Shown: one piece after another, positions 1,379 through 36,181 of the stretch
Position numbering within the stretch: the first letter of the stretch is position 1
How the letters are laid out: every line of letters starts with the position of its first letter
DNA from: Rebecca billardiae RCC1528
Lineage: Eukaryota; Protista; Haptophyta
Direction: 5' to 3'
Assembly (NCBI GenBank): GCA_965240325.2
Contig: OZ251236.1
Coordinates: 62,001-126,000, forward strand
Length of the DNA stretch: 64,000 nucleotides
The notes under the pieces: generated by a model
Databases searched by the model: none
What the model was told of the DNA's origin: nothing
The model's input: only the letters and a program-made list of their open reading frames with translations
Made by a program: the position numbers and the translations under genes

Positions 1379-2947
1379 ATGGAACACGCCTTCCCCAGGC
1401 TCTACGACGACGTCTCTCTCCAGCGGACCCTTAGGGGCCTCGCGTGGAACGCATCAAACAACGCACCACTTACGCAAACGCAGCGCATAATCCGCATCAA
1501 TAGGGTGTTCACGCCCAGCGCGCATCTCTCGCGAAAACAAGCACGAGAACAGCACCGCTACCGCAACATGAAACGCACTTCGACAGCACCTCTTGGCCCT
1601 CGGGCGCAAGCGCACACATCGGCAACGAGATCTCGGCAGAGAGGAGCGGTGAGACAGCATAACCAGAAGCACCCCCCCTCCCAGCGAACAGCGCACCTCA
1701 ACACACATGCGCCCTCCCAACAGGAGCAGCAACTCCAGACCAACCACGTGCCCGACACCGACCCGCCGCCAGAGGACGACCTTCCAGGCGCAGAGGGAGA
1801 GCGATGGGTGCTAGTGCGCAGCGGCTCCCGGCACGACACGGTGCGTCGCACACACATACCCCCCGCGACATGCCCCGCCGTCTCTCCCATTGGGGACTTA
1901 GCCGCGCCGGGCGAGCGTAAATCGCGCGTGGGCGGCCGTTTCGCGCCATTAGCGGCTTTTGCGCCAGAAACGCTCACCGCTAACCCGGACGGGCCGGCGA
2001 AATGCGCGGACGAAAGTCCGGAGCACCGGGCGCGCGCGCCGGATTTGCCGGGCCGGGCGGAGGCGAGGCGTAAAAACCCACTGCCGGTCGCGGGCGTCGC
2101 CAGAACGACGATGGCTGCGACGCAACCGCGACGCCCTGCGCCCGAGGCACTGGCCCGCGGAATGGCTGGCTCGACCGACGGGCCTACCGAGCAGGCGGGG
2201 ACCGTGCGGCCGCGAGAGATGGGGATGGAGAGAGCGCAACCGCAGGCGCAGCGGCAGCGCGTAGACGGCCAGCACGCTGGCGGCTCGACGGAAGATGCGC
2301 CGCGCGGGGCGGTGAAGCTCGAGGACGCTGTGAACAGGAACAACCGCTCAAAGCCCCCCGGGACATGGCAGGCAGCTGCCCGGGGTCCCAGCTGTCTGAA
2401 AGTGCCGAACCGGCCCAGCAGTACCAGGACAGCTGGGAACTACTGCCCTGGCTGGACGCAGCCCCGCAAACACACCCGTGCGCTCAGGTTCGTACTAATG
2501 TGCAGCACCAGAGCACGTTCACGCACCTGCCCTGCGCATCTGCGACGGGCCGGACGACTGCGAAAAGGCAGCACTAGTAGTAGTAGGAGGAAGAGTAGGA
2601 GGAAGACTAGCAGGCATCGAAATCGTCACATCGCCCAAGCCCGGCCGGCACCAGGTGCATCGGTCGATCCATCAAGATTGCCCAGGCAGCGGCCTAAGGG
2701 CAACACAGCACCACCAACAGCAAGGCATGTGCCACTGCGCCGCACTATGTCCTACCACCGGACAGCACTGCCGGTAACCAGGCGTACAGTTCTGGCCTAT
2801 GGGCGCAAGCTTCTGCAGCACGCCGCCAGCAGGGTAGCAGTGCTCTCACAGCCCAGCAGACCAGGCCACGCGGACGCGCAGTGCGCCCAGCCCCCATACC
2901 ACAACAGTGATCGGCAGCAGCCCACACCCCGACCGGTGCCAAAATGA
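1379..2947 (+). CDS. Putative LINE ORF1 (basic, low-complexity, no recognised domain)
   Basis: 522-codon open frame immediately upstream of ORF2. Its TGA overlaps the ORF2 start in ATGA (2944-2947). No RRM or zinc knuckle recognisable. Confidence 0.4.
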   Translation: MEHAFPRLYDDVSLQRTLRGLAWNASNNAPLTQTQRIIRINRVFTPSAHLSRKQAREQHRYRNMKRTSTAPLGPRAQAHTSATRSRQRGAVRQHNQKHPPSQRTAHLNTHAPSQQEQQLQTNHVPDTDPPPEDDLPGAEGERWVLVRSGSRHDTVRRTHIPPATCPAVSPIGDLAAPGERKSRVGGRFAPLAAFAPETLTANPDGPAKCADESPEHRARAPDLPGRAEARRKNPLPVAGVARTTMAATQPRRPAPEALARGMAGSTDGPTEQAGTVRPREMGMERAQPQAQRQRVDGQHAGGSTEDAPRGAVKLEDAVNRNNRSKPPGTWQAAARGPSCLKVPNRPSSTRTAGNYCPGWTQPRKHTRALRFVLMCSTRARSRTCPAHLRRAGRLRKGSTSSSRRKSRRKTSRHRNRHIAQARPAPGASVDPSRLPRQRPKGNTAPPTARHVPLRRTMSYHRTALPVTRRTVLAYGRKLLQHAASRVAVLSQPSRPGHADAQCAQPPYHNSDRQQPTPRPVPK

Positions 2948-5900
2948 TTCAGGGGCATCGCCAGGCTGGCACTGCCAGGCAGACAAGTGAGCAGGCTGCA
3001 GCGGGAAGGCCACAGGCGAGGGGCTCAGGCAACAGGGCTGAGGAACGTTCGCTCACAATCGCCTGTGGGAACGTAGGGGGCATGGCAGGCTTGACACGCA
3101 GGGCAAGACTGCAGAGCATCCTGGACACCAAGCGCTGGGACATCGTTCTGCTCCAAGAGACCGCACTCACTAGAGACAAAGCCACTCAGGACATCCTTAG
3201 TGGCTATACGACCTACCACGACCCAATGCCCCCCAACTCGTGCTCAGGCAGAGGAGTGGCAATAGCAGTGCGGAAGGATGGCAGGCTGCCTCTCTCCAGG
3301 CTGGAGGTGACCCGAAGCGGCACTGAAGGCGGCCAGGACACTGCCGGATACATGCTCCAGGGGCGCCTGGTCTTCACCACCGCCAGGGGTACCAGCTTTG
3401 TGGTGGAGGCCACATCCTTCTACATCCCCCCTAACAGTAACCGCAACAGAGCAACTATACTGCCATGGGTAACAGAAGTCCTCCGCACGGGCACCCCGCT
3501 ACACACGGGCCGACAAGATCTCCTCAGGCTTGCAGGAGGGGACGCCAATGGCACTTGGGAGGTCGGCGAGGCACTTAGGCGGCTCGACACAACACGCGCG
3601 TTCACCGCTCACCGACCAGGGGATTTCAAAGCGGCCATGGAGACAGTGACTGACCTTCACAACATGAAACCAACCGGCAGTTTCAACCCTGCCACCGAAT
3701 ACACCCACTCGAGTGGCAACACCCTGGCCCGACTGGACTACATATTCACCAACATGGCAGAGCTAACGCAACACTTTTGGCACTCGGACCCTCTCCTGGA
3801 GGACGCATGCATCCCTGCGCTCCCCAACGGGGACGGGAGCACCCACCATTTTATCCAGGGTAGAATCCCACTGCACAAGCTGCGGGGGGCCACCAGGCCT
3901 GTGGTCCACGAGCTCTACAGGCCATACAGGTTCTACATAAACCTGGCACACGGAGAGACGGTCAAGGAACTCAAAGCCGCATTATCCGACCCCGTAGAGA
4001 GCGACATCAGGCGGCTGGACGACGTCCACACCCATGCACACCTGTTCGCAGCCCCAGTTGCGACGATTACTGCAGCTCCGCCACAAGTGGTGAGCGACAT
4101 GGAGGAAGCCCTCCCTGCCGTCCTGGAGTGGCTCGCCTCCGTAGCAACTGACAGAGTCACGTCTGCACTCGACTCCAGCCAGCAGCCACGGGAGACCACA
4201 GTAGCCCCTGGCAGGCGGGCCCCCAAAGCGATCGCGCCGAATGCCCTCAGGGATTTCAAACTGGGGAATGCGTACCGCCGCCAGGTCGCAGTGATCACCA
4301 GGCTGCAGCAAATCCGCCCAGGTGCTAGCGAGCAGCACGGGGAAGTGCACACAGGCTTCAGGTACAGCAGCCACAGCAGGCATGGGCGACTTGCGGAGCC
4401 GGTGCGCCTGGCAAAAGCACTGGACAGTTATGAATCGGCACTGACTACCGCAAACGCCCCCCCTGAGGGTATGCCCCAGCCGCTCGGCTTGCCTTTCCCC
4501 ACCCTGGAGGCCATCTACCAGGCTGGGCCCGCCTCGACAGCACAGTGGCTGTCGGAACTGAAAGCACGACAAGCCTTGCACCAAAATGAATACGAGCTCC
4601 TGCAGCGCGAGCACGAGGACACTCTTGCCAAGGACAGGACGAGAAAAATCCAAGACGACATGCGGAGGAAATGCACCCGCCACTTTCGCAAAATGCTCTT
4701 CCCCAAATCAAACCATGCTGGATTCGAGATGATGATGCTCAATGACCTGGACGCTGGCAGTGGGAAAATTACCTCCGACCCAAGCAAAATCAAACGATAC
4801 GCAGAGGCGCACACGGCGAACAACGTGGGGACAGCGCCGAGCTGCAGGCAGGGGCCTGCCATAGAGGATACAAATGAAGCAGTCTGGGAAGAGATCCAAA
4901 GCAGATGGACTCCGGCCCAGCGAGCGCTGGAAAGCTCCCTGCTGGACCTGGAAGGCCTGCGCTCCCTCCTGGCAAAAGCTGACTCGAACGCTGCCCCTGG
5001 TTTGGACGGGATCCAAGTATGCGCCTTGAAACTCTTGATAAAGATCAACAAAGCCTTTGAAGGCATCTTGGTCAACATCGTCAACACAATCCTCCGCGCA
5101 GCGGCTGTACCAGCCCACCTCAAAGACGCAGAGCTTGCCTACTTCTACAAAGGCAAAGGGGACCCTCACGATCTGAACAATTATAGGGGAGTGGCACTCC
5201 AAAGCACTGTGTACAAACTGGCGGCAGCACACAGGGCGAGATGCATCCAGTCGATCTGTGACCAGCTGGGTCTGATCTCGCCGGAACAAGCAGCAGCGAG
5301 CAAGCACGGGCAGCCGGAGCTCCAAGTGGCGGCACTGGTGGCAGCCATGACCCATGCCAAGGCCAGTTCTGCCGAGATCCACGTCACTACATGTGATATA
5401 AGCAAGGCCTTTGACAGAGTGCCCCATGAGTCGCTGAGGAAGGCCCTTCTCCTGCACGGCTTCTCCGCCCAACTAATTGATGAACTTGACCGACTGGACG
5501 CTCACTCTGTGGCCACCACCAGGACCCCCTATGGCCACACTGACAAAGTGCCGATACTGCGTGGGTGCAAGCAAGGCTGCCCGCTAAGTCCCATAAAATT
5601 CTGTCTCTTCATGAACATGTTCATTGCATCCTACTCAGCCAGCCACCCTGACCATGGATACTCGTTTCCAGCCGCCAGGCATGACGCTGGCGCAGGAGAC
5701 TCCCTGAAGGTGCGCATCTTGGGGTACATGGACGACATAGCTTTCCTTGCAGAGTCAGAGACGGACAGCGCCGCCCAAGTGCGCGCACTGGGACTATTCC
5801 TCAGCGCTCACGGCATGGCACTCAACCCCTCGAAGTGTGTGCACGCAAAGAAAGGAAGGGGCAGAGGGGCGCACGGCGCGCCTCCTCTGCCCCCCCTCCG

Positions 5901-24508: not shown

Positions 24509-26961
24509 TCAGAAGTTCTCCTTGTGCAGCCGGAACACCGTGCCCGACGCCTCGTCCGAGTGCTGCACGCACGCGTGCTTGAGCGTCTGGCCGATGCCCG
24601 CGGCGCCGCAGAAGATCACGCCGATCGGCCGGCCGCCGAAGCGCTCCTTGACGCGCCCAAACTCGCGCGCCCAGTCGGGCCGGCCGGCGTGCACGCGCAC
24701 GTACGGCTCGCCCGTGCGCGGGTCCGTCACCGCCTGCATCTCGCGCAGCACGCTCCACAGCTCGGCCGAGCCGCCGGCCGCGCCGCCGGCCGCGCCGCCG
24801 CGCGCGTCGAGCGCCTCCGCCGTCGTGCCGGTGAGGTAGATCGAGATGTCGAGGGCGCGCTCCGCGTCGTTGGACGCGGCGACGGCCGCGGTGATCTCCG
24901 CCGCCTCCGCGTCGAGCGCGCGCACGCGGCCCCGCGCCTGCTCCACGTCCACCGCCGTGCCCGAGCGCAGCGCGCCCAGCAGCCGCGCGCGCTCGGCGTC
25001 GAGCGCGCGCGCGCGCCGCTGCAGCTCGGCGCGCTTGTGCGCGGAGGCGGCGTCGGCGCCGTAGAGCTCGGAGTGCGCGAGCTGCCGCGCCTTCAGGTGC
25101 GGCAGCCGCAGCAGCAGCCAGCGGAACGCCGTCACGTCCTGCAGCCGCGCCACCCACACAAAGTGCACGTGGTACGGTTGGAAGCCGAGCATCCAGCTGC
25201 AGCCGCAGCCGGACCGGACGCAGCCGCACGAGAGAAAAAAAGTCCGGCCGGGCAGAAGAGAGTCCGGGGCCCGAGAGTCCGGGGTCCGAGAGTCCGGGGG
25301 AGGGCGGGCGCAGGCGCGCGCGGGGATGAGGCCGGCCGACCGGGCGGGCGCCGCGCCGCGTGCCGCCGAGGCCCTCGCCGCGCGCGCGCCGCGCACGGCC
25401 ACGCCCGCCGCGGCCGGCGCCGCGCGGATTGGTGGGGGGGGGGGCGCTGACTCGGCGCGCGCGGCCAGGCAGCCGGCAGCGCAGCGCAGCCGGCGAGCGC
25501 GCGCACCGGTGCATGACGGTGCCCTGCAGGATGGAGGCGAAGGGGGTGACGCCGATGCCCGCGCCGATGCACAGCACCGAGCGGTACGTGAGGAACGCCT
25601 GCGACGGCGCCCCGTACGGGCCGTCCAGCCGAAACAGCCGTCGGCCGTCGGGCCCCCACACGGTCCCAAAGTGCATGGCGCCGTCGGCGGCGGTGGAGCG
25701 CGTGCCGAGCTCGACCGCCGGGCGCTGCCGCGGGTTGAGGAGCGAGAGGTGCGCGCACACGCGCCACGTCCACGAGGCCGCGTCGGGGACGACGCTGCGC
25801 CGCGCGGGGGGGGGGGGCGGGGGGCGGGGGCGGGGGGGGGGGGCGAGCCGAGCGGCCGCGCGGGAATCAGACGTGCGGACGTGGGAATCAGACGTGGGGG
25901 AAGAATCAGAGTACGTGCGCACGCAGAGCCTCAGCACGCCGCCCAGCAACGCACCGGATGTTGATCTCGACAAAGTCGTCCTGCGGCGACGACGCGATGG
26001 TGAACGGGTGCCACTCCCACCGCGAGACCGCGGGGCAGCACAGGTAGAGATACTGCCCCTCCAGATAGTCCATGCACGCGCGCACGGGCGAGCCTCCCAC
26101 GCCGCGCCGGTTGTCGAAGCTGATGGGTGGCGGGGGCGCGGGAGGGCGCGCGGCGCGGGGAGGGAGGGGTGGGTTGGGGCGCGGGGAGGCGCGGCAGAGC
26201 GGGCCGGCGTCCGGCGGCGGCGGCAGGAGGCGCGGCGCGGCGGGGCCGCCGCGGGCGAGCACCCCGCGCCGCGCGCCGCGCCGCCGCCGCCACAGCGCGC
26301 GCGCGCAGCCCCGCGCGCACCGCAGCGTGAACACCGCCGGCTGCCGCGCCGACCGCAGCGGCCGCGCGACCGCGCCGCCGCCGCCGCCGCCAATGGGCGG
26401 CGCGCCGCGCTCGGCGGGCGTCGGCGCGGCGGGCTTGGACGCGGCGCCGCCGGCCCCGTCGGCGCCGCCGCCGCCGAACAAGCGCCAGCTCGCGCCGCCG
26501 CCTTGCTGCGCGGCAGCGGCCGGCCCCGCGCCCTCCTCCGCACCGGCGGCGCCGCGCGGCGCCGGGGCCGTGCGCGCGCCCGCCTTGGGCGCGCCGCCAC
26601 GCGGCGCGGCCGCGCCGCCGGCCCCGTCCGCCGCCGCGCCACCGCGGCCGGGCGCGAGCCAGCCCAGCACGCCGCGCTTGGGCGCCTCGGCGCGGCCGCC
26701 GCCGCCGCCGTCCGCGTGCGCGGCGTGCGCGGGCGCGTCCGAGTAGTACCAGGCGACGCTGAGCAGCGCGACCGGCCTGCGCCCGCGCAGGAACTGCCGG
26801 AACAGCCGCTCCGCGGCGTACAGCGACAGCGGCCCGCTCGCCCACAGGTAGAAGGCGGAGCCGTGCGAGAGCAGCAGCGCGAAGAACGGGACGAACAGGT
26901 GGTGGCACAGCCTGGGCGCGCGGCCGGCACAAAACGCAAAGAGGCGGGCGGGGCGTGCGCG

Positions 26962-26992
<31 letters not shown>

Positions 26993-29900
26993 GCGGCGCG
27001 GTCGACACGGAACAGCGCGCAGGGGCGGGGCGGGGCGTGTGCGGGGTGTGGTGTGGTGTGGTGTGGTGTGGCGGCGCAGCGCCGCCGCCCGTGCGCCGGA
27101 CCGCCCCGCCCCCCCCCGCTGACAACCGGCGGGCGGGCGCATTTTATTTTCACCACCCCGCCCGCCTCGCATTCCCCCAAGCTGCTGCTGTGTCCGCTGT
27201 GCGTGTGTGCGGCTACTGTGCGTGTGTGCGCGTGTGCGTGTGCGCAGCTGTGTGCGCGTGCGTGCGGCCGTGCGTGCGGCCGTGCGTGCGCACCAGAAGG
27301 TCTCGTAGTGGCAGCGCTTCACGTTCTCAGCGGCTGCCGCAAACAGCAGCAGCATCACGCCCAGCAGCAGGTGGCCGGACAGCCCGAGCCACACGCGCGC
27401 GGAGTAGGCGAGCACCTGCGCAGCGCGAAGCGCAGCGCGGCAGCCGCGGGGCGGGCGGGGGCGGGCGCCGGGCCGTGAGCGCGGCACGGACGCGCGGGTT
27501 CGGGGTGAGGGTTAGGGGTTAGGGTTAGGGTTAGGGTGAGGGCTAGGGCGCGCGCACCGTCGCGTCGCCCGACGGCGTGACCCCCGCCTTGAAGTAGCTG
27601 CTGGCGAACGCGTAGTTGGCGTAGTGGCACGACGCGTGGCCGAGCACGCTCGCGCACAGCCCGTACTTGGCCAGCGCCTGGTGCGCGACGATGTTCTTGT
27701 CCAGCGGGATCAGCCGCGGGACGAGCGCGCCCAGCCGGGTGGGCAGATACGCCGCGGCAGAGTGCAGCGCGGCCGCGGCCGAGCGGAGCACTGGGAGCAG
27801 CAGCAGCGTGCAGTGGAGGTTGCACAGCTGGCCGAAGCCCTTGGCGAGCGGGTACCAGCGCGTGAGCGCCTTGGCCGACTGCCCGTGCCGCCACGCCGCC
27901 TCGGCGAAGAGCAGCAGCACGGCGGCGGTGTAGAGCGACACCCACACGCGCCGCGGCAGCCGGTCCGATCGCACGTGTTGCGAATACCATCCTGAGGCCT
28001 TGCGCCGCAGGGCGCGCAGCTGGCGCGCAGAGTAGCCGCCGCCGCCCTCCGGCCCCGGCGCGGCGGACGGCGCACCCGCCGCCGCCGACGCGCCGCGGCC
28101 CGCGCCGCCACCGCCGCCGCCGGCCGCCGCGGGGTGCAGCGCCCACGCGCGCGCGTCGGGCGGCGCGGCGAGCGCGGCGCCCAGCTGCAGTGCCGCGCAC
28201 AGCAACAGCATGGCGCCGCCAAACCGCAGCGGCACCGGGCACGGCTGTGCGAGCAGCGTGGTGGCGTAGTACCCGGTGGCGCACGCCTTGAGCGGCCACT
28301 GCGCGCGCGAGCGCACGCACACCTACGCGAGCGAGCGCGGCGGGAGGGTGAGTGTCATAGGGCTAGGGTTAGGGTTAGGGTGGTTAGGGTAGGGTAGGGT
28401 TGCGCGCCACGGCTGCTGTGCGCGCATGCTCGCGCGCGCACCTTGGTAAGAGCGGAGCTGCCGGCGGGCGGGGCGAGCGCGTGGAGCACGGCGCCGAGGC
28501 CGTGCGAGACCGAGCGCGCGAGGCGCACGCGCGCCGACGCGTCCGCCGCCACCGCGTCCGCCACGATCGCGCCCGAGCTGCGCCGCCGCATCATCGCCGC
28601 GCCGCCGCCAACGCCGCCGCCGCCGCCGCCGCGTCCGCCGCCGCCTTCCAAGTCGCCGCCGCCGCGCCGACCACCAGCGGCGGCGCCGCCTCGCGCGCCG
28701 CCGCCCCCACCGCCGCTCGCGCCGCTCGCGCGCCGGCTCGCGTCGGGCGTGCGGAACGACGAGCCGCCCGCGCCGCCCTCCGTGAGCGGCTCGGTCTCGT
28801 CGCCTGCGGCCGAGCCCTTGGCCCAATACTGCGGAGGGTGCGTGCGCACCCAGTTGCGCAGGCCGAACGGAGCGCCGAGGCCGAGGAGGGCCCAGGCGTG
28901 CGTGGGGCGGACGGGGCCGGAGGGCGGCGGGAGGTGCGCGTGCCGCGCCGCCCACGCGTCCGCGCAGCCGCACCACCCGCCGCCGCCACTCCGCCGCGCC
29001 GCCGCCGCGGCCGCGCGCCGCTGGCCGCGCGCCGCGCGCGCGTCGAGCGCGCGCCGCGCCTCCGCCGCCGAGTGCGGCCCCGCTTCGAGCGCCAGCACGT
29101 ACTCGAGGGCGGCGCAGCCGACGCAGGCGAAGAAGGCGCCGCTCGCCTCGGCCACGCACCCGTAGAACACCAGCGTCAGCACCGCGCTCCACGCCGTCAG
29201 CGCGCACGTCAGCAGCGTCAGGTTGCGCGCCAGGAACGGCAGCGCGCGCAGCCGGTGCGCGGACGGGACGTGCACGGCGGAGGCGCGCGCGTGCGCGGAG
29301 GCGCAGGCGGCCTTGGCGCGGGAGGCGAGGGCGGAGGCGAAGGCGGGGGCGCGCGGGCGGAGCCGCGCGCGCCACGAGTGGCCGCCGCCGTCGCCCGTCG
29401 GCGCGCCCGTCGCCGTGAGCCGCGGCGGCACCGGCGGCGGCGCGGCGGCGCCGCCCGCGCCCGCGCCCGCCGCCGCCTCGCCTGCGCCCGCCTCGTCGTC
29501 GTCGGCGCCGTCGGTGGGCGCGCGCGCGCGCCAGCCGAGGAGCGCGCCGACGCCGCCGAGCACGCCCGCCGCGGGCGTCGGCGCGTCGTCCGCCGACAGC
29601 CCGCGCCGCGCCGCATCCTGCACGTCCAGCTCTGTGAGGATTTCGTCAAGTTTACCCAGCTTGCTAATGATGTCCTCGACCTGCGCGGACTGGCGCTCCT
29701 CGGTGCGCTTGAGGCGGGCCTCCTTGAGCGAGCGCGCGCCGCTGGAGAGCGCGTCGGCCACGCGCTCGACCAGGCTCGAGCCGCCGCCGCCGCCGCCATC
29801 GCCCTCCTTTGGCGCGGCGGCGGCGGCGGCGGCGGCCGAGCCGGCGCCGCCGTGCGCCGAGCCGCCCGACTCGGCGGAGAGCGAGGCAGGGACGGGCGGC

Positions 29901-30124
29901 GGCGTGGGCGCGCGCGAGGAGAGCTTGGCGCTCGGCTGCGCCGCCTCCAGCGGCACCTCGCGCAGCGCGCGCCACGCGCCGCTCACGCCGTCCGCGCCGA
30001 GCTGCGGCGCCCACACGGCCGTGCCGTCGCCGAGCACGCCCTCGCGCCTGAGCTCGCGCAGCGCGTCGGCGGTGACGGGGCCGCGGGTCTCGCCGCGCGG
30101 GTTGACGTAGTGGAAGCTCGCCAT
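24509..30124 (-). CDS. NADPH oxidase (NOX/Rboh-like) with N-terminal GYF_2 and extra membrane module; about 7 exons
   Basis: Heme His in IVAHQAL, LGHASCH, LCHHLF and LLSHG. FAD motif EWHPFTIASSP. DGPYGAP. NADPH motifs GAGIGVTPFASIL, HFVWVAR, GRPDW, IFCG. Terminal FRLHKENF*. Phase-0 intron 28441-28323 links the N-terminal exon. Confidence 0.88.
26963..27071. repeat. (TG)n and (GTGTG)n microsatellites in a NOX intron
   Basis: Direct reading. Confidence 0.85.
27502..27547. repeat. Interstitial telomere-like (TTAGGG)n in a NOX intron
   Basis: GGGTGAGGGTTAGGGGTTAGGGTTAGGGTTAGGGTGAGGGCTAGGG. Confidence 0.85.
28358..28401. repeat. Interstitial telomere-like (TTAGGG)n in NOX intron 1
   Basis: TAGGGCTAGGGTTAGGGTTAGGGTGGTTAGGGTAGGGTAGGGTT. 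Confidence 0.85.
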
Positions 30125-30326: not shown

Positions 30327-31625
30327 ATGGTGGCGGCCATCGGGGCCATCGCGCTCGCCACTTGGGCGCTCGCGGCGCACCCCGCCGCGCCGCCGGGGTA
30401 CGCCGTGCGCCACGCGTTCACGGCACCCGCCGCGGCCGCGCGCACCCGCGTCACCGAAGCGCTGCGCGCGCAGCTGCCCGACGCCTTTGCCTCGCCGTCC
30501 GCCGCGCGGCGCGCGGTCCGGCGCCGGCTCGTTCTGCTCGACGGCACGCCGTGCGCGTGCGACACGGTGCTGCGCGGCGGCGAGCGGCTCGTCGTGGTGC
30601 ACCGCGCGGGCGAGCCGGAGGGCGCGCCCGGCCGCCCCGCCGCCCCGCGCCGCTACGCAGATCGCGATCTCGAGATTGCGTACGAGGACGAGGCGATGGC
30701 GGTCGTGGTGAAGCCGCAGGGCATGCCGACGCAGGGCGCGCACCGGCTCTCGGTGCACACGCTGCTGCCGCACGCGCTCGCGCCGTCGGCGCTGGACGGG
30801 CGGCTGCGCCGGCCGCAGCACGCCCACCGCCTCGACGCGCCCACCGGCGGGCTCCTCGCCGTCGCCAAGACGCACGACGCGCTCGTCGCCCTCTCGCGAA
30901 GTTTCGCGGAAAGGGCCGTGCAGAAGACGTACACGGCGCTCCTCGCGCCGGACGCGTGGGCGGCGGCGGCGGGCGGGCTCGTGGGCGGCGGCGCGGCCCG
31001 CGCGGCCGAGCCGCCGGCGTGCGCGACGGGCGGCGGCTACCGCCCGCTGCCCGACGCGGGCGAGATTGCAATCTCGCTCGGCGGCAAGGAGGCGAGCACC
31101 GCGTACGCAGTGACGCGGCGGTACCGCTCGCTCGGCCGGCTGCGCGAGCTGGCGGCCGTGACGCTCACGCCGCACACGGGTCGGACGCACCAGCTGCGCC
31201 GGCACGCGGCGCAGGGGCTCGGGTGCGCGCGCCGTCCGCGCGCGAGCGCCTACCGCGCGCGCGCGCGCGCGCCCGCCGACCGTGCGGCCGCGCGCGCGCG
31301 CGCGCCGCGCGCCCTCCGTCGCAGCTGGCCGATCGTCGGCGAGCCGCGCGGCGCGTACGCGTCGGACGCGTTCCGCGCGGCGTCGCCCGGCCGCGGCCTC
31401 TTCCTGTGGGCCAGCGGCCTCGCGCTGCCCCACCCGCTCTCCGGCGAGTGGCTCGTCTTTGAGCGGCCGCCGCCGCACAAGTTTGCGAGGTGGCCGGAGC
31501 GGGAGGCCGCGCGCGCCGCGGCGGCGGGTGGCGGCAGCGGCGTGGGCGAGGGCGAGGGCGCGCCGCCCGGGCCGGGGCCCGGCGCTCCCGCGCGCGCGCC
31601 GCCACGCCCGCCGCCGCGCTGCTGA
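30327..31625 (+). CDS. RluA/RluD-family pseudouridine synthase with S4-like region and signal-like N-terminus; intron 31223-31324
   Basis: IAYED..MAVVVKPQGMPT, catalytic HRLDAPTGG, VQKTYTAL, TGRTHQLRRH, LG|WPIVGE, LFLWASGLALPHP. Confidence 0.9.
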   Translation: MVAAIGAIALATWALAAHPAAPPGYAVRHAFTAPAAAARTRVTEALRAQLPDAFASPSAARRAVRRRLVLLDGTPCACDTVLRGGERLVVVHRAGEPEGAPGRPAAPRRYADRDLEIAYEDEAMAVVVKPQGMPTQGAHRLSVHTLLPHALAPSALDGRLRRPQHAHRLDAPTGGLLAVAKTHDALVALSRSFAERAVQKTYTALLAPDAWAAAAGGLVGGGAARAAEPPACATGGGYRPLPDAGEIAISLGGKEASTAYAVTRRYRSLGRLRELAAVTLTPHTGRTHQLRRHAAQGLGCARRPRASAYRARARAPADRAAARARAPRALRRSWPIVGEPRGAYASDAFRAASPGRGLFLWASGLALPHPLSGEWLVFERPPPHKFARWPEREAARAAAAGGGSGVGEGEGAPPGPGPGAPARAPPRPPPRC

Positions 31626-31891
31626 TATCGCATCACGGCATCAGTCAGCCTCGGCCGCCATGCTGACTGTCTGATCACGCTGACTGCGTTCCGCCAAAGT
31701 TGAGCGCCTGCGTCAGCTACTGTACTTGCGAGCGAGTGCAAACGATCAAATCATCTTGCGGGATCGTACCCGCGTTCCCCATACTCGCTGCTGGCAATTC
31801 GTTCAAGCGCGCGCGCAGCGCCGGCCCGTTCCGAGCGGATCGTTGGCAGGCGGCCCGTCGCCTCATCAGCCGCGCGCGGCGCGGCGGGCAG

Positions 31892-32938
31892 ATGGCGCCG
31901 GAGCGGCCGACGGCCGAGGGCTTCGCGCCGCCCAGGCAGCTGTCTGCGCCGTTCCTCCTGAAGGGGCTCGTGCCGCGCGTCTCGCCCCCGCCCCGCGACA
32001 CGCCCACGCCAAGCTGCCCGCCCCCGCCGGCGCCGGCGTCCGAGCCCGCGGGCGGCGCTCGCCGCGCGGCCGGCGGCGCGCTGCGGACGCCGTCGCCCGC
32101 GCGCGCGCGCGCGGCGCGCTCGGCCGAGGCGAAGGGCGGCTCGGGCCACTCGGCCTCCCTCCGCCACCGCGCGCCGCCCCCCGTGGCGCACGAGGCGGCC
32201 GCGGCGGCGCCGGCGCCAGCCGAGCCGGCGGCCGATCCAACTTCCGGCGCCGGCATGCTCAGCAAGCTGTTGACGCCGTCGCCCGCGCGCGTGCGCGCGG
32301 AGCGCTCGGCCGAGAAGGCGGGCGGCGGCTCGGGCCTCTCCGCCGCCCTCTGGCACCGCTCGCCGCCCGCCGTGCCGGGCGGCGCCGCCGAGCCGCTGCG
32401 CACGCCCTCGCCCGCTGGGCCGACGCCGACGCCGCAGGAGAGCGGTACTTTCTCGGAAAGTTCCGAGCGGTCGAGCGGGCGGCCGTCGCTGCTCGGCGCG
32501 ATCCTCTTCCGCTCGCCCGAGCCGTCGCGCACGCCCGGCTCCGACGCCGGCTCCGACGCCGACGCCGACGCCGACGCCGATGGCGCGCCCGCCGCCGACG
32601 CCGCCGCCGCCGCCGCCGCGCCCGCGCCGCGCCCGAGCCTGGCTGGCTGGGGCGTGGCGGCGCGCAGTAAGCCGCGCGGCGCGGCGCGCGGCGGCGGCGT
32701 GGCGCTCGGCCTCGTGCTGGCGGTGCTGCTGCTGGGCGGTGGCGGGCTCGCGGTGGGGATGCTCGTGCGCAGCGCCAGCCGAGCGGGCGGGCCCGCGCTC
32801 GGCGGCGGCGGCGGCGGCGGCGATGGCGGTGGCGGCGGCACCGCCGCCGCCGCCTCCGCCCGTGGCGCGGCGCCGCCGCCCTCGCCGCCGCCCTCGCCGC
32901 CGCCCTCGCCGCTGCCGCCGCCGTCGCCGCCGCCGCCG

Positions 32939-32969
<31 letters not shown>

Positions 32970-35900
32970 TCGTCGAGTACATCCGCCTCCTCCTCGACCT
33001 CGACCCCTCCGCCCTCGCCACGGCCGAGCAGCGCTCCGAACTCTCGGCCCAAATCGCTTCGCTGCTGCAGCTGCCGGCGGGCGCGGTGTCGGTTGCGAGT
33101 GTGCAGCCGGGCTCGGCGGTGGTCGTCTTGCGCGTGGTGCGGCGCGGCGGCGGCGCGGCGGGGCGGAGCCTCGCGGACGCGCTCGCCGCGCTGCCGCCGG
33201 GCCGCCTCGCGCAGGCGCTCGGCGCCCCGCTCCTCCGCCCGGCCGAGCAGATGGTCGCTGGGTGCGCGCGCCGCCGCGCGCGCCCCCGCACGCGCATGCG
33301 CGCCGCGGCCGCGCGCGCGTGCGCGCCGCCGCCGCGGCCGCGCGCCGTGCGGGCGTGGCGCGCGAGCTCACGCGCCGGGCGTGCGCGCCGCGTCCCCCGC
33401 CCGTGCGCCTCGCGCAGCTGCACGCTGCCCAGCGCGCCCAACTATGACTCCGCCGCCGACGTGGACGACAGCTCATGCACACACGGCCCGCCGCCGAGCG
33501 CGCCGCCGCCGAGCGCGCCGCCGCCGCGCGCGCCGCCGCCGCGCGCGCCGCCGCCGAGCGCGCCGCCGAGCGTGCCGCCGCGCGCGCCGCCGCCGAGCGC
33601 GCCGCCGCCGAGCGCGCCGCCCGGCGCGCCGCCCGTCGCGCCGCCGCCGAGCACGCCGCCGCAGCCGCCGCCGAGCGCGCCGCCGAGCGCGCCGCCGAGC
33701 GCGCCGCCGCCCGCCGCGCCGCCGCCGCCGCCGAGCGCGCCGCCGCCTGGCGCGCCGTCGGCGCCGCCACGCGCGCCGCCGAGCGCGCCGCCGCCGCCGC
33801 CGCCGCCTCGCCGCCCGCCGCCGCCGCCGCCGCCGCCACCTTCCGAGCCGCCGCCGCCGCCACCGCCGCCCGCCGAGCCGCCGCGCCCGCCGCCGCGCGC
33901 GCCGCCGCGCGCGCCGCCGCCGGGCGCGCCGCCGCCGAGCGCGCCGCCGCCGGGCGCGCCGTCGGCGCCGCCACGCGCGCCGCCGAGCCCGCCGCCGCCG
34001 CCGCACCCGCCTCGGCCGCCGCCGTCGCCGAGCCCGCCCGGCCCGCCCCGCCCGCCGCCCTCGCCCCCGCCTGCCCCGCCCCACCCGCCGCGCAGCCCGC
34101 CGCCCGCCACCCTCGTCGCGCTGCGCGGCAGCACGCCGCGCACCAACGCGGCCGTGGCGGCAGGCGGCTGCTTTAGTTGCGCGCGCGTGGCGTGCACGCG
34201 CGCGGGGGCGAGGGCGGCGGGCGCGAGCGCGGACGGCGTGGCGTACAACGCCACCGACGCTGCCGTGCGCTGCTGGGGCTGCGCCGACGGCGGCGTGCGC
34301 GGCACGCAGACAGCCGCCCCACACGTGCGCGCCGCGCCGCGCGCCGCGCCGCCGCGCGCCGCCGCGCGCCGCGCCGCGCCGCGCGCCGCGCCGCACCGCG
34401 CGCCGCGCGCCGCGCCGCGCCGCGCGCCGCGCCGCGCCGCGCCGCGCGCGCGTGCACGCGGCGGCGCCCACGCGCGGCGCGCCCACGCCTGCGCGCGTGC
34501 TCGCGTGCGCACGCGCGCGCGCCCCGCCCCTCAGGACCCGTTCGTCCGGCTCGGCCTCCCCGCCACCCGGATCCGCCGGCTGGGCGCGGGCCGCTGCCAC
34601 GCGTGCGCGCTGTTTGCTGACGGCCGGCTCAAGTGCTGGTGCGCAGCACCGGACTCGCCCGGACTCGCGCCCGGACTCGCGCCGGACTCGCGCCGCGTGC
34701 GCGTGTGGCTGCCTGTGCGCACGTGCGGGCGGGCGCTCGGCTGCCACGCGTGCGCCGTCCCGCCCTGCGGCCGCGCCCGTCGCCGCCGTGGCGCAGCGCT
34801 GTGCGCGCGCGCTCGCGCCGCCGACGCCCCGCGCCTCCGCGCGCGCGCCCACCGCCGCCGCGCCGCCGCGTCGCGCGCAGGGGCTGCAACGGTCACGGCC
34901 AGCTGGGCCTGGGCGTCGCGCAGCCGGACGTGGGCACGCCCGCGTACCCGCTCCCGAGCAACGGCAGCCTGCCGGCCCTCGACCTGGGCCCGACGCGGCT
35001 GGCCGTGCGCGTGAGCGCGGGCGAGCACTTCACCTGTGCCATCGTCGTCGACCGCGCGGCCGGCGCGGACCGCACGCCGCGCGCGCTGTGCTGGTGCGAG
35101 CGCGCGCGCCGCCGCCGCCGCGGCCGCACCCTCGCGCACTCGGCTCTCACGCCCCCCGGCCCTCCCCGCCGCGCCGCAGGGGCGACAACGCGCACGGCCA
35201 GCTCGGCGCGGGCGACGGGGACTCGCGCGGCGCGCGCCCGCGCGAGATGGGCGCCGCCCTGCGACCCATCGACCTCGGCTCGCGGCACGCCCCCGCGTGG
35301 CTGGCGGCCGAGGTGCCGATCTCGGCCGCCCAGATTGCAATCTCGGCGCGCGAGGTGGTCGAGGTCGCGACGGGCGACGCGCACGCGTGCGCGCTGCTCG
35401 GCAGCGCGCGCGTCGTGTGCTGGGGCGACAACGCGCACGGCCAGCTCGGCCGCGGCGACACGGCCGCGCACGTCGGGCGGCGCGCGGCCGACCTGGGCGA
35501 TCGGCTGTCCGCCGTTGACCTCGGCCGAGATCGCAATCTCGGCGGCGGAGATGGCGATCTCGCCGCGGCGCGCTGGGTGTACGCCGGCAGCCACTTCGCG
35601 TGCGCGCTGCTGCGCTCGGGCGGCGCCAAGTGCTGGGGCCACAACGCCGACGGCCAGCTCGGCCAGGGCGACGACCGGAGCCGCGGCCGCGCCGCCGACC
35701 AGCTCGGTGACCGGCTGCCGCCGATCGCGCTCGGCGGCGGCGTGGCGGCGCGGCTGCTGACGACGGGCGACGCGCACGCGTGCGCGCTGCTGCGCGGCGG
35801 CGAGGTGGCGTGCTGGGGGCGCAACGCCGCGGGGCAGCTGGGGCACAGCCTCGGCGCGCGCGTGGGCGACACGCGCGGCTCGATGGGCACGAGCCTCGCG

Positions 35901-36095
35901 TGCGTGCAGCTGCGGCCGGCGCCGGGCGAGGTCGTGCGCGGGCTGAGCGCGGGCGCGGCGCACACGTGCATCGAGCTGAGCAGCGGGCGCGTGCGCTGCT
36001 TCGGCGCGAACGAGCGGGGGCAGCTCGGACGCGGGGCGGGCACGCACGAGGACGTCGGCTGGGGCGCGACGGGCTGCCGCGCGGTGTCGGCCTGA
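31892..36095 (+). CDS. Membrane-anchored protein with extensin-like Pro-rich stalk and C-terminal RCC1/BLIP-II repeats (several introns)
   Basis: TM VALGLVLAVLLLGGGGLAVGMLV; (SAPPP)n region 33490-34110; repeats HACAL...CWGDNAHGQLG, KCWGHNADGQLG, ACWGRNAAGQLG, RCFGANERGQLG. Confidence 0.75.
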
Positions 36096-36181
36096 CGTGC
36101 GCCGCCATTCTGATTCTGGCTGATGCGGCTGCCAACGGCCTCACCGTCAGGGCGGTCCCAGGTCGCGAGATCTTGAAACGA

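Follow-up and report, generated by a model that had tools for sequence, protein, structure and literature searches.

Organization of the locus

We analysed a 64,000-nucleotide (nt) stretch of DNA from the haptophyte Rebecca billardiae RCC1528 (contig OZ251236.1, positions 62,001 to 126,000 of the forward strand; hereafter the window, with all coordinates counted from its first letter), which carries on its minus strand a gene predicted to encode an NADPH oxidase (NOX) preceded by a GYF_2-type domain and by a membrane module resembling p22phox, the small membrane subunit that in animals is a protein apart from NOX. The gene extends from an ATG at 30124 to 24509, its stop codon occupying 24511-24509, and comprises six certain exons (30124-28442, 28322-27558, 27415-27294, 26911-25955, 25794-25507 and 25196-24509), read from the sequence and checked by script, that join into a frame without an internal stop. 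From the N-terminus to the C-terminus, the predicted product consists of a GYF_2-type domain, four extra membrane helices, a full NOX core with its domains for flavin adenine dinucleotide (FAD) and NADPH, and FRLHKENF as the closing residues; with six exons it would span 1,500 codons, and with a 201-nt in-frame piece removed (see below) it would have 1,433 residues. An initial annotation had assigned this fusion to 28160-30124, a range that takes in exon 1 and only the first part of exon 2, whereas the gene runs on to 24509.

The guanine-plus-cytosine (GC) content of this part of the window is 72-88%, and both strands of the window have open frames as long as 1,100 codons, so that at this GC content open frames alone carry little meaning. 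The GC content of third codon positions (GC3), however, is 0.92-0.98 in each exon and stays at 0.89-0.99 in one frame through all of exon 1, whereas it is flat at 0.70-0.78 in the introns. Exon 1 (561 codons) opens at the ATG at 30124 with MASFHYVNPRGETRGPVTADALRELRREGVLGDGTAVWAP and closes with ...SSALTK at 28442; its donor reads AAG/GTGCGCGC (slashes mark splice boundaries) and the acceptor TAG/GTG, from which exon 2 begins at 28322 in phase 0. All introns of the gene start with G/GTGCG and end with (C or T)AG, and their phases are 0, 0, 2, 2 and 2. Searches of the window were run exon by exon; the spliced whole was checked for length and stops, and a 32-residue stretch of it across the extra intron described below was compared with the relative P0003.

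P0003 is the closest (57% identity) of 110 representatives that we obtained by an exhaustive search with exon 2, and it is located on L002, a 4,062-nt contig of the Joint Genome Institute (JGI). By its shape L002 is mRNA-like, with 62 nt before the Met and, at the other end, KENF, a stop and a further 140 nt, and there is no intron in it at any of the window's intron sites. Two further G/GTGCG sites in the window, at 29160 and 28850, could have been donors of introns hidden within exon 1, but we rejected them because the residues flanking them are conserved with L002. A third candidate lies within exon 4, where 201 nt at 26320-26120 (minus strand; GTGCGCGC...CATCAG) are in frame and free of stops, and are absent from the intron-free P0003. 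Since removal of this piece gives AVFTLRFDNRRGVGG, which matches the corresponding P0003 stretch AVFTVRFDNRRGLGG, the piece is most likely an intron, and the sequence makes a seventh exon boundary here probable. In-frame introns of this genome can, as at 26120-26320, masquerade as coding sequence.

A four-helix module precedes the NOX core

The module ahead of the NOX core has three parts, all on the minus strand. The motif AHRLRALPFLARN and helices a and b, of which helix b ends with LEY, occupy residues (aa) 289-348 (29081-29260) and were delimited by hhalign, hmmsearch and hydropathy. They are followed, in what the A5 alignment (see below) places as the helix b-c loop, by an insert rich in Gly, Ala and Arg (aa 349-561, about 215 residues; 28442-29080). 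Helices c and d (WPLKAC... and VPLRFGGAMLLLCAALQLGAALAAPPDARAW) lie at aa 9-61 of exon 2 (28140-28298), as judged from identity to L002, hhalign and the MAFFT alignment A5. Hydropathy marks a hairpin at aa 300-348 of exon 1, a strong segment at aa 34-52 of exon 2 and a marginal one at aa 13-30 of exon 2, and all of these extra segments are N-terminal to NOX transmembrane helix 1 (TM1; exon-2 aa 126). The four extra hydrophobic segments that the initial annotation had seen ahead of the NOX helices are thus present, that at exon-2 aa 13-30 marginally so. Because the N-terminus of NOX is cytosolic, the count of extra helices must be even, and four fits. Identity to L002 is 47% over the motif and hairpin and 50% over helices c and d. 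The loop between helices b and c has about 215 residues in the window, about 135 in L002 and about 10 in other relatives; its insert has a GC3 of 0.89-0.98 and corresponds to the cytosolic intracellular loop 1 (ICL1) of p22phox, the topology of which is known (PMC9711523).

A chain of profiles links the module to p22phox

We compared the module with p22phox through alignments of related proteins. A1 is an alignment of the modules of ten haptophyte-type relatives; A2 is an alignment of a second group with differently worded four-helix modules; A8 is an A2-type alignment without three near-identical sequences that match Pfam themselves; and A5 is an unforced MAFFT alignment of all modules. The window's motif AHRLRALPFLARN and helix a matched A1 (hhalign 96%, E 2.7e-9; hmmsearch 21 bits), and A1 matched both A2 (hhalign 98.4%, E 8.6e-15) and A8 (98.4%, E 5e-15). 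The A2 profile, for its part, matched the human cytochrome b-245 light chain (8gz3_A, 7u8g_B and 8kei_A) over all four helices at E 7.5e-11, and the A8 profile matched the same human p22phox chains over residues 5-141 at E 5e-11. Three relatives score above the gathering score of Pfam Cytochrom_B558a directly, namely P0096 (27.4 bits), P0097 (28.0 bits) and P0132 (27.8 bits). When all 64 kb were scanned in six frames with A1, the top two matches were the exon-1 open reading frame (ORF; E 6e-6) and, at the colinear place, the exon-2 ORF. The likeness to p22phox that the initial annotation had pointed out accordingly has a path of profiles behind it, from the window through A1 and A2 or A8 to human p22phox, that is significant at each step.

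The register that had been put forward earlier (ARN..LEY and K..FGG against ANE..LEY and R90..LGT of p22) is the one found in the alignments. In A5, ARN of the window aligns with WA.N of the relatives, LEY with FEY, itself aligned with E53-Y54 of p22, and PPDARAW with LP..KEW; the Lys of WPLKA falls in an invariant Arg column (R90 of p22), a Thr in the column of H94 and a Gln in the column of Asn/Y121. The residues N11, E53, R90, H94 and Y121 of p22phox form a caged polar network that is a hotspot of mutation in chronic granulomatous disease (CGD; Liu et al., PMC9711523). In A5, N, E, K, T and Q of the window fall in or beside the five columns, with Glu retained and Arg exchanged for Lys; this placement depends on the alignment, the Asn lying one position off N11 in the HMMER alignment.

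We also predicted the structure of the module from its L002 counterpart. In the AlphaFold2 (AF2) model of this counterpart (279 aa, built from alignment A5), four helices reach predicted local distance difference test (pLDDT) values above 90, and the insert is disordered. Searched with Foldseek against 350,542 chains of the PDB, this model ranked p22phox first (8gz3_A with a probability of 0.75, then 7u8g_B and 8kei_A) at TM-scores by target of 0.64-0.65, although with E-values of about 3, which are not significant; all matches other than p22 had TM-scores by target of at most 0.22. With VIA-align (48,161 chains), rank 1 was again a p22phox chain (8kei_A; Z 12.2, 119 residues, 23% identity). 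The model thus predicts a four-helix membrane bundle, and the loop between helices 2 and 3 and both ends of the bundle would be cytosolic because the NOX N-terminus is.

Several results weigh against a kinship with p22phox. Pfam PF05038 gave no match at E<=10 on exons 1 and 2 of the window, and none on L002 or on the members of A1; phmmer of exon 1 against PDB sequences returned Gly-linker noise and no p22; and the A2 profile did not find the locus on the six-frame window, nor did the A1 profile find p22phox in the PDB. Comparisons with A2 by hhalign added nothing, since neither A7 nor the entire N-terminal piece of L002 could be aligned with it across the long insert of the loop. Matches of the window's helices b-d to A1 and A2 were weak (E 0.001-0.007, probabilities 6-19%), helix c (exon-2 aa 13-30) is marginally hydrophobic, below 1.4 on the Kyte-Doolittle scale, and it has Lys where all relatives have Arg. 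As to structure, unrelated four-helix bundles equalled the Z of p22phox in VIA-align, which did not separate it from them; the ESM Atlas returned only generic helical bundles when searched by shape and no usable match when searched by features; and because the AF2 input alignment held p22-like rows, the model speaks for consistency and is not independent proof. As the direct tests of the window against p22phox were negative, the claim of homology for the window rests on the intermediate profiles. Homology of the window's helix module to p22phox, in diverged form, is nonetheless supported by the sequence, if only indirectly.

The negative direct tests and the weak matches of helices b-d would also be expected if the four helices were a lineage-specific anchor unrelated to p22phox that shares at most helix a with relatives headed by a WW domain (see below) and bears a chance hydrophobic likeness to p22phox, four-helix bundles being a common fold. 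We consider this unlikely, because the helix-a motif is highly significant and modules of the helix-a type are homologous to p22 at E 5e-15 and 5e-11 in two steps; because the weak b-d matches are all colinear and share a single register, polar residues falling in A5 at or beside the columns of the buried network; because the distance of the module from the NOX core agrees with that in other proteins of the family; and because only p22phox chains reached a TM-score above 0.5 in Foldseek.

The NOX core is complete

The rest of exon 2 (27558-28139) encodes a cytosolic linker and then NOX TM1-TM3, as placed by phmmer against 5o0t, the membrane domain of csNOX5 (E 0.002 for exon 2), and by P0003. 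Exon 3 (27294-27415) holds TM4 and HYETFW and is colinear with the intron-free P0002 and P0003. Exon 4, on either side of the probable extra intron, contributes TM5 (HHLFVPFFALLLSH), TM6 and the first part of the FAD domain, which carries a low-complexity insert (exon 4a, 26321-26911, read from the sequence), and then the FAD-binding WHPFTIASSP (exon 4b, 25955-26119; Pfam FAD_binding_8, E 4.6e-10). The remaining FAD domain and the NADPH-binding GAGIGVTPF are encoded by exon 5 (25507-25794; Pfam NAD_binding_6), and the last exon (24509-25196; NAD_binding_6, E 2.2e-8), which matches the dehydrogenase domains of csNOX5, human NOX2 and NOX5 in the PDB, encodes the NADPH domain with a coiled insert, FCGA, and FRLHKENF before the stop. 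All of these lie on the minus strand. All six NOX helices were found, the TM5 pair being H-x12-H (HHLFVPFFALLLSH) and both TM3 His being present; judged by its sequence, then, the NOX core is complete in its two-haem, FAD and NADPH features.

The two TM3 His (27610-27670, exon-2 aa 218-237) are 15 positions apart (H-x14-H), one residue wider than in csNOX5, the alignment with which needs a one-residue gap at this spacing; on reading by eye, relatives of the WW type such as P0005 share the H-x14-H spacing, and P0132 has the usual 14. The low-complexity insert of the FAD domain (26330-26760) and the coiled insert of the NADPH domain (24850-25080; both minus strand) have shorter counterparts at the same two sites in P0003.

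This wider TM3 spacing, which is unusual, would suit a metal reductase of the FRE type, acting on ferric or cupric ions, in place of a NOX that makes superoxide, with the module serving some other purpose. The C-terminal HKENF and the HHLF...H of TM5, which we take to be of the NOX type, speak against a reductase, as do the best solved relatives, which are NOX5 and NOX2 and not FRE or STEAP. Given also that the known partners of p22phox are NOX1-4 (PMC9421330), a reductase seems to us unlikely.

GYF domain, helices and NOX probably share one chain

The L002 contig bears on whether the N-terminal parts and the NOX core belong together. Its frame 3 (nt 63 to about 1615) encodes MAPAPLFFYANRTGEQRGPVS..., then IHRLRALPMLARN with a hairpin ending in IEY, and then helices c and d; the NOX core is read in its frame 1 (nt 1636-3918). 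Against a single chain stands the apparent frameshift that this closest relative has near nt 1615. The GC3 signal, however, passes from frame 3 to frame 1 at about nt 1615, within a G-rich run (nt 1600-1640), without a non-coding gap, which argues for a one-base error or a real frameshift in the G-run and not for two genes; the change of frame would also account for the gene caller having given the NOX half alone, as P0003. Where the window has ...ALTK/VCVRSRAQWPLKA..., L002 reads ...TAKGSVRSVWQWPVKA... continuously across the site of the window's intron 1, and this reading through the junction supports the joining of exons 1 and 2.

The phase-0 splice of exon 1 onto the NOX core that the initial annotation had read is upheld by the 28442/28322 junction, the continuous coding signal and the read-through in L002. 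Its further proposal of a single chain is likewise sustained by that in-phase splice, by L002, which holds the GYF domain, the helices and the NOX core, and by the many relatives in which module and NOX share one ORF; on the sequence, the assignment of all three parts to one chain is supported.

If the locus instead held two genes, one for a membrane protein with a GYF domain and two helices and one for a NOX with a short extension, their shared frame would be a by-product of the 80% GC, at which either strand has, by chance, runs of 500-1,000 codons without a stop; an in-frame Met-Met is present inside the Gly-rich insert. We hold this to be very unlikely: GC3 remains at 0.89-0.99 in one frame across exon 1 and falls only in introns, the splice sites of intron 1 agree with the consensus that the remaining introns of the gene share and join the exons in phase 0, the mRNA-like and intronless L002, with untranslated regions at both ends, has both halves and reads through the junction, and a gene boundary behind helix b would divide a four-helix module that about 50 relatives have in one piece. 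Equally improbable is a decaying or mis-modelled gene with low-complexity expansions and no working protein, for, although the Gly/Ala/Arg inserts in the module loop and FAD domain are very long, at least one in-frame intron was first read as coding and the relative L002 has a frameshift, 4.3-4.5 kb are free of stops and frameshifts, the cofactor motifs are all intact, the codon-position bias is strong throughout, and the intron-free P0003 also has an insert at the same site of the FAD domain.

The N-terminal head is probably of the GYF type

The first 55 residues (29960-30124, minus strand) form the GYF_2-type domain, identified by Pfam, by the match in L002 and by Foldseek with a predicted structure. 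Pfam GYF_2 (PF14237) matched aa 6-43 of exon 1 at E 3.6e-5 and 23.9 bits, and the orthologous position of L002 at E 1.5e-5 and 25.1 bits. For the first 68 residues (alignment A6, of two rows), AF2 predicts a beta-beta-alpha-beta unit with pLDDT 77-85 over aa 1-40, and the nine top Foldseek matches of this model in the PDB were all GYF domains, among them Smy2 (3fma, probability 0.99), GIGYF1 (7ruq, 0.97), GIGYF2 and an Arabidopsis GYF, at E-values of only 0.03-0.1. The head is thus predicted to have the beta-beta-alpha-beta fold of GYF domains, in line with the GYF_2 residue pattern that the initial annotation had seen.

Two features count against a canonical GYF domain. The window's Pfam score of 23.9 bits is slightly below the gathering score of 25.8, and the positions of the aromatic G-Y-F are G-V-L. 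The canonical GYF proline pocket reads W..Y..GPF..M..W...GYF; the window's head reads F.Y......GPV....L..L...GVL, so that several canonical aromatics are replaced by aliphatics and the aromatic pocket is not preserved. Given these aliphatics, binding of proline motifs by the window's GYF_2 domain is something that we infer from its position and by analogy.

Between the head and the module lies a low-complexity and coiled segment, presumably cytosolic (aa 56-288; 29261-29959, minus strand), the translation of which contains the proline runs TPPPVPA and APPPVPPR. This arm has an in-frame GC3 of 0.91-0.99 and matches no Pfam family. EF-hand families gave no Pfam match at E<=10 in any exon, in keeping with the earlier remark that EF-hands are lacking and at variance with an EF-hand-regulated NOX.

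Relatives carry the module behind different heads

A local hidden Markov model (HMM) search found the module, of either type, in about 50 of the 110 representatives and in 69 of the 144 proteins examined, and in relatives it always ends 70-100 residues before NOX TM2. Seven relatives (P0004, P0006, P0008, P0010, P0013, P0014 and P0047) have HRLRA.P.LARN and four helices ahead of NOX, the window's equivalent of this motif being AHRLRALPFLARNLTLL. Word searches brought no relatives with exon 1 and one fragment with A1, and metagenomes, scanned once with exon 2 and once with A3, brought none.

Those relatives that are N-terminally complete bear a small adaptor domain. It is an SH3 domain in P0040, P0019, P0026, P0098, P0132, P0039, P0075, P0024, P0068, P0021 and P0043, a WW domain in P0004, P0006 and P0014, and a GYF_2 domain in the window and L002; in P0132, Pfam gives the order SH3, Cytochrom_B558a, Ferric_reduct, FAD_binding_8, NAD_binding_6. 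Among the sources of these proteins are Rhodelphis marinus (P0098), Paulinella micropora (P0024), Amorphochlora amoebiformis (P0068, GAB5364594.1), Cafeteria (P0039; MMETSP1104, taxid 33652), Prymnesium polylepis (P0051, of the A1 type) and EukProt (P0132). The fusion thus occurs in several protist groups with SH3 or WW heads in place of GYF_2.

WW domains also occur inside the insert of the NADPH domain, at aa 710-739 of P0005 and aa 766-797 of P0156, which parallels the SH3 domain of a Naegleria NOX (PMC3591440).

A putative single-chain flavocytochrome

We propose that the product of this one gene is a single-chain flavocytochrome, about 1,430-1,500 residues long, that consists of a GYF_2 head, a p22phox-homologous module and a NOX, a reading to which we assign a probability of roughly 0.78. 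By analogy with the NOX family, electrons would pass from NADPH through FAD and the two haems to extracellular O2. If the p22-like bundle acts in cis as p22phox does in trans for NOX1-4, it would pack on the NOX helices, stabilise the haem-loaded enzyme and aid its maturation. Helices M1 and M4 of p22 pack on M3-M5 of NOX2 (PMC9711523), and helix a, the best-conserved part of the module, would be the equivalent of p22 M1; after helix d, a cytosolic linker of about 70 residues would stand in place of the proline-rich tail of p22. The head may recruit or sense cytosolic partners in place of Ca2+ control through EF-hands, and together with the N-terminal proline runs (TPPPVPA and APPPVPPR) it could serve in partner docking or autoinhibition. 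That SH3 and WW domains, both readers of proline motifs, occupy the same place in relatives suggests a docking role for the head.

The closest known counterpart is mammalian flavocytochrome b558 (NOX2 and p22phox; 8gz3, 7u8g and 8kei), which combines, as the window's gene product is predicted to do, a two-haem NOX of six transmembrane helices, FAD and NADPH sites and a four-helix bundle of the p22 type, with bundle termini and the helix 2-3 loop cytosolic, polar residues at the positions of the buried network, and a logic of proline motif and reader domain at the cytosolic face. Unlike the mammalian complex, the window's enzyme would be one polypeptide with the module N-terminal to NOX, and its putative reader (GYF_2) would sit on the enzyme itself and not on a partner of the p47phox type. 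Its helix 2-3 loop has about 215 residues as against about 35, Lys replaces R90 and Thr replaces H94 in A5, and its similarity to p22 is detectable via intermediate profiles only. A proline-rich C-terminal tail like that of p22 was not found, helix d of the window being followed by a Gly/Ala linker into NOX TM1 and the proline runs being N-terminal.

Two groups of relatives share more of this architecture. The SH3-headed NOX with p22-like modules (P0132, P0039, P0024, P0068 and P0098) have an adaptor head, a four-helix module and a full NOX core, but their head is SH3 and not GYF_2, their modules match p22phox directly (E 5e-11), and they are without the HRLRALPxLARN motif and the long loop insert. 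The WW-bearing NOX of haptophyte type (P0004, P0006, P0014, P0005, P0156 and P0051) have the nearest NOX cores after P0003 and L002, and also the HRLRA.P.LARN motif and an A1 module; unlike the window, they have WW in place of GYF_2, a short helix 2-3 loop and the helix 3 Arg.

More distant systems resemble the window's gene in single respects. Fungal NoxA, with the p22phox homologue NoxD/Pro41, is a Ca2+-independent NOX that needs a membrane partner of the p22 type (PMC9421330), but in fungi that partner is encoded by a separate gene. A Naegleria gruberi NOX has a proline-motif reader (SH3) within a protist NOX chain (Zhang et al. 2013, PMC3591440); there, however, the reader is in the NADPH-binding C-terminal domain, and no module of the p22 type is reported (PMC3591440). 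EF-hand NOX (NOX5, plant RBOH and DUOX) also join a catalytic core and a regulatory N-terminal extension in one chain, whereas the window's gene has no detectable EF-hand and an extension that is embedded in the membrane.

A survey of 2022 restricted p22phox and its phox partners to opisthokonts (PMC9421330), and the origin of p22phox has been called unknown (Zhang et al. 2013, PMC3591440). In the literature that we searched, we found no description of a natural p22-NOX fusion, and the window's gene seems to be a diverged, GYF-headed variant of a family that is present in databases (P0132, through Pfam) and seemingly unreported. Tentatively, and at somewhat less than even odds, we suggest that p22phox is not an opisthokont invention: a NOX-fused bundle with swappable SH3, WW or GYF_2 heads would exist in haptophyte-type algae, stramenopiles (Cafeteria), Rhizaria (Paulinella and Amorphochlora) and Rhodelphis as a family so far undescribed, and the arrangement of animals, in which SH3 domains of p47phox read the proline tail of a free p22, would be a split, inverted form of this older single-chain design, or a parallel to it. 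Ancestral or parallel, such fusions would be a natural Rosetta stone for the pairing of p22 and NOX. The presence of p22-type modules on the NOX chain in several distant lineages of protists extends the range of p22phox and speaks independently for the two belonging together. Three unrelated folds (SH3, WW and GYF_2) at one position point to control by short-motif docking and not by Ca2+. A single-chain flavocytochrome, stoichiometric by construction, could be easier to express and study than a two-subunit enzyme. Regulated production of extracellular superoxide has been reported in haptophytes (PMC6640029), and the gene product, as predicted from its sequence, is a candidate enzyme for it.

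Intron repeats and neighbouring genes

Intron 1 (28323-28441, minus strand; 119 nt, phase 0) carries telomere-like CCCTAA repeats, as does intron 2; the repeats lie at 28363-28380 and 27506-27542 on the minus strand. Allowing one mismatch, CCCTAACCCTAA is found six times in the 64 kb, where 0.04 were expected, and all six occurrences are confined to these two introns. Upstream of the NOX gene, on the plus strand at 30327-31622, lies a divergent PseudoU_synth_2 gene (RNA pseudouridine synthase, E 4e-22), the start of which is 203 nt from the NOX ATG and so leaves scant room for upstream exons of the NOX gene. This gene, too, probably has a GC-rich in-frame intron, judged by eye to lie near 31210-31325. 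Farther along the plus strand (31700-36100), the ORF list contains a very proline-rich frame with repeats of the type PPPSAPPP, followed by GDNAHGQLG stretches that resemble RCC1 repeats.

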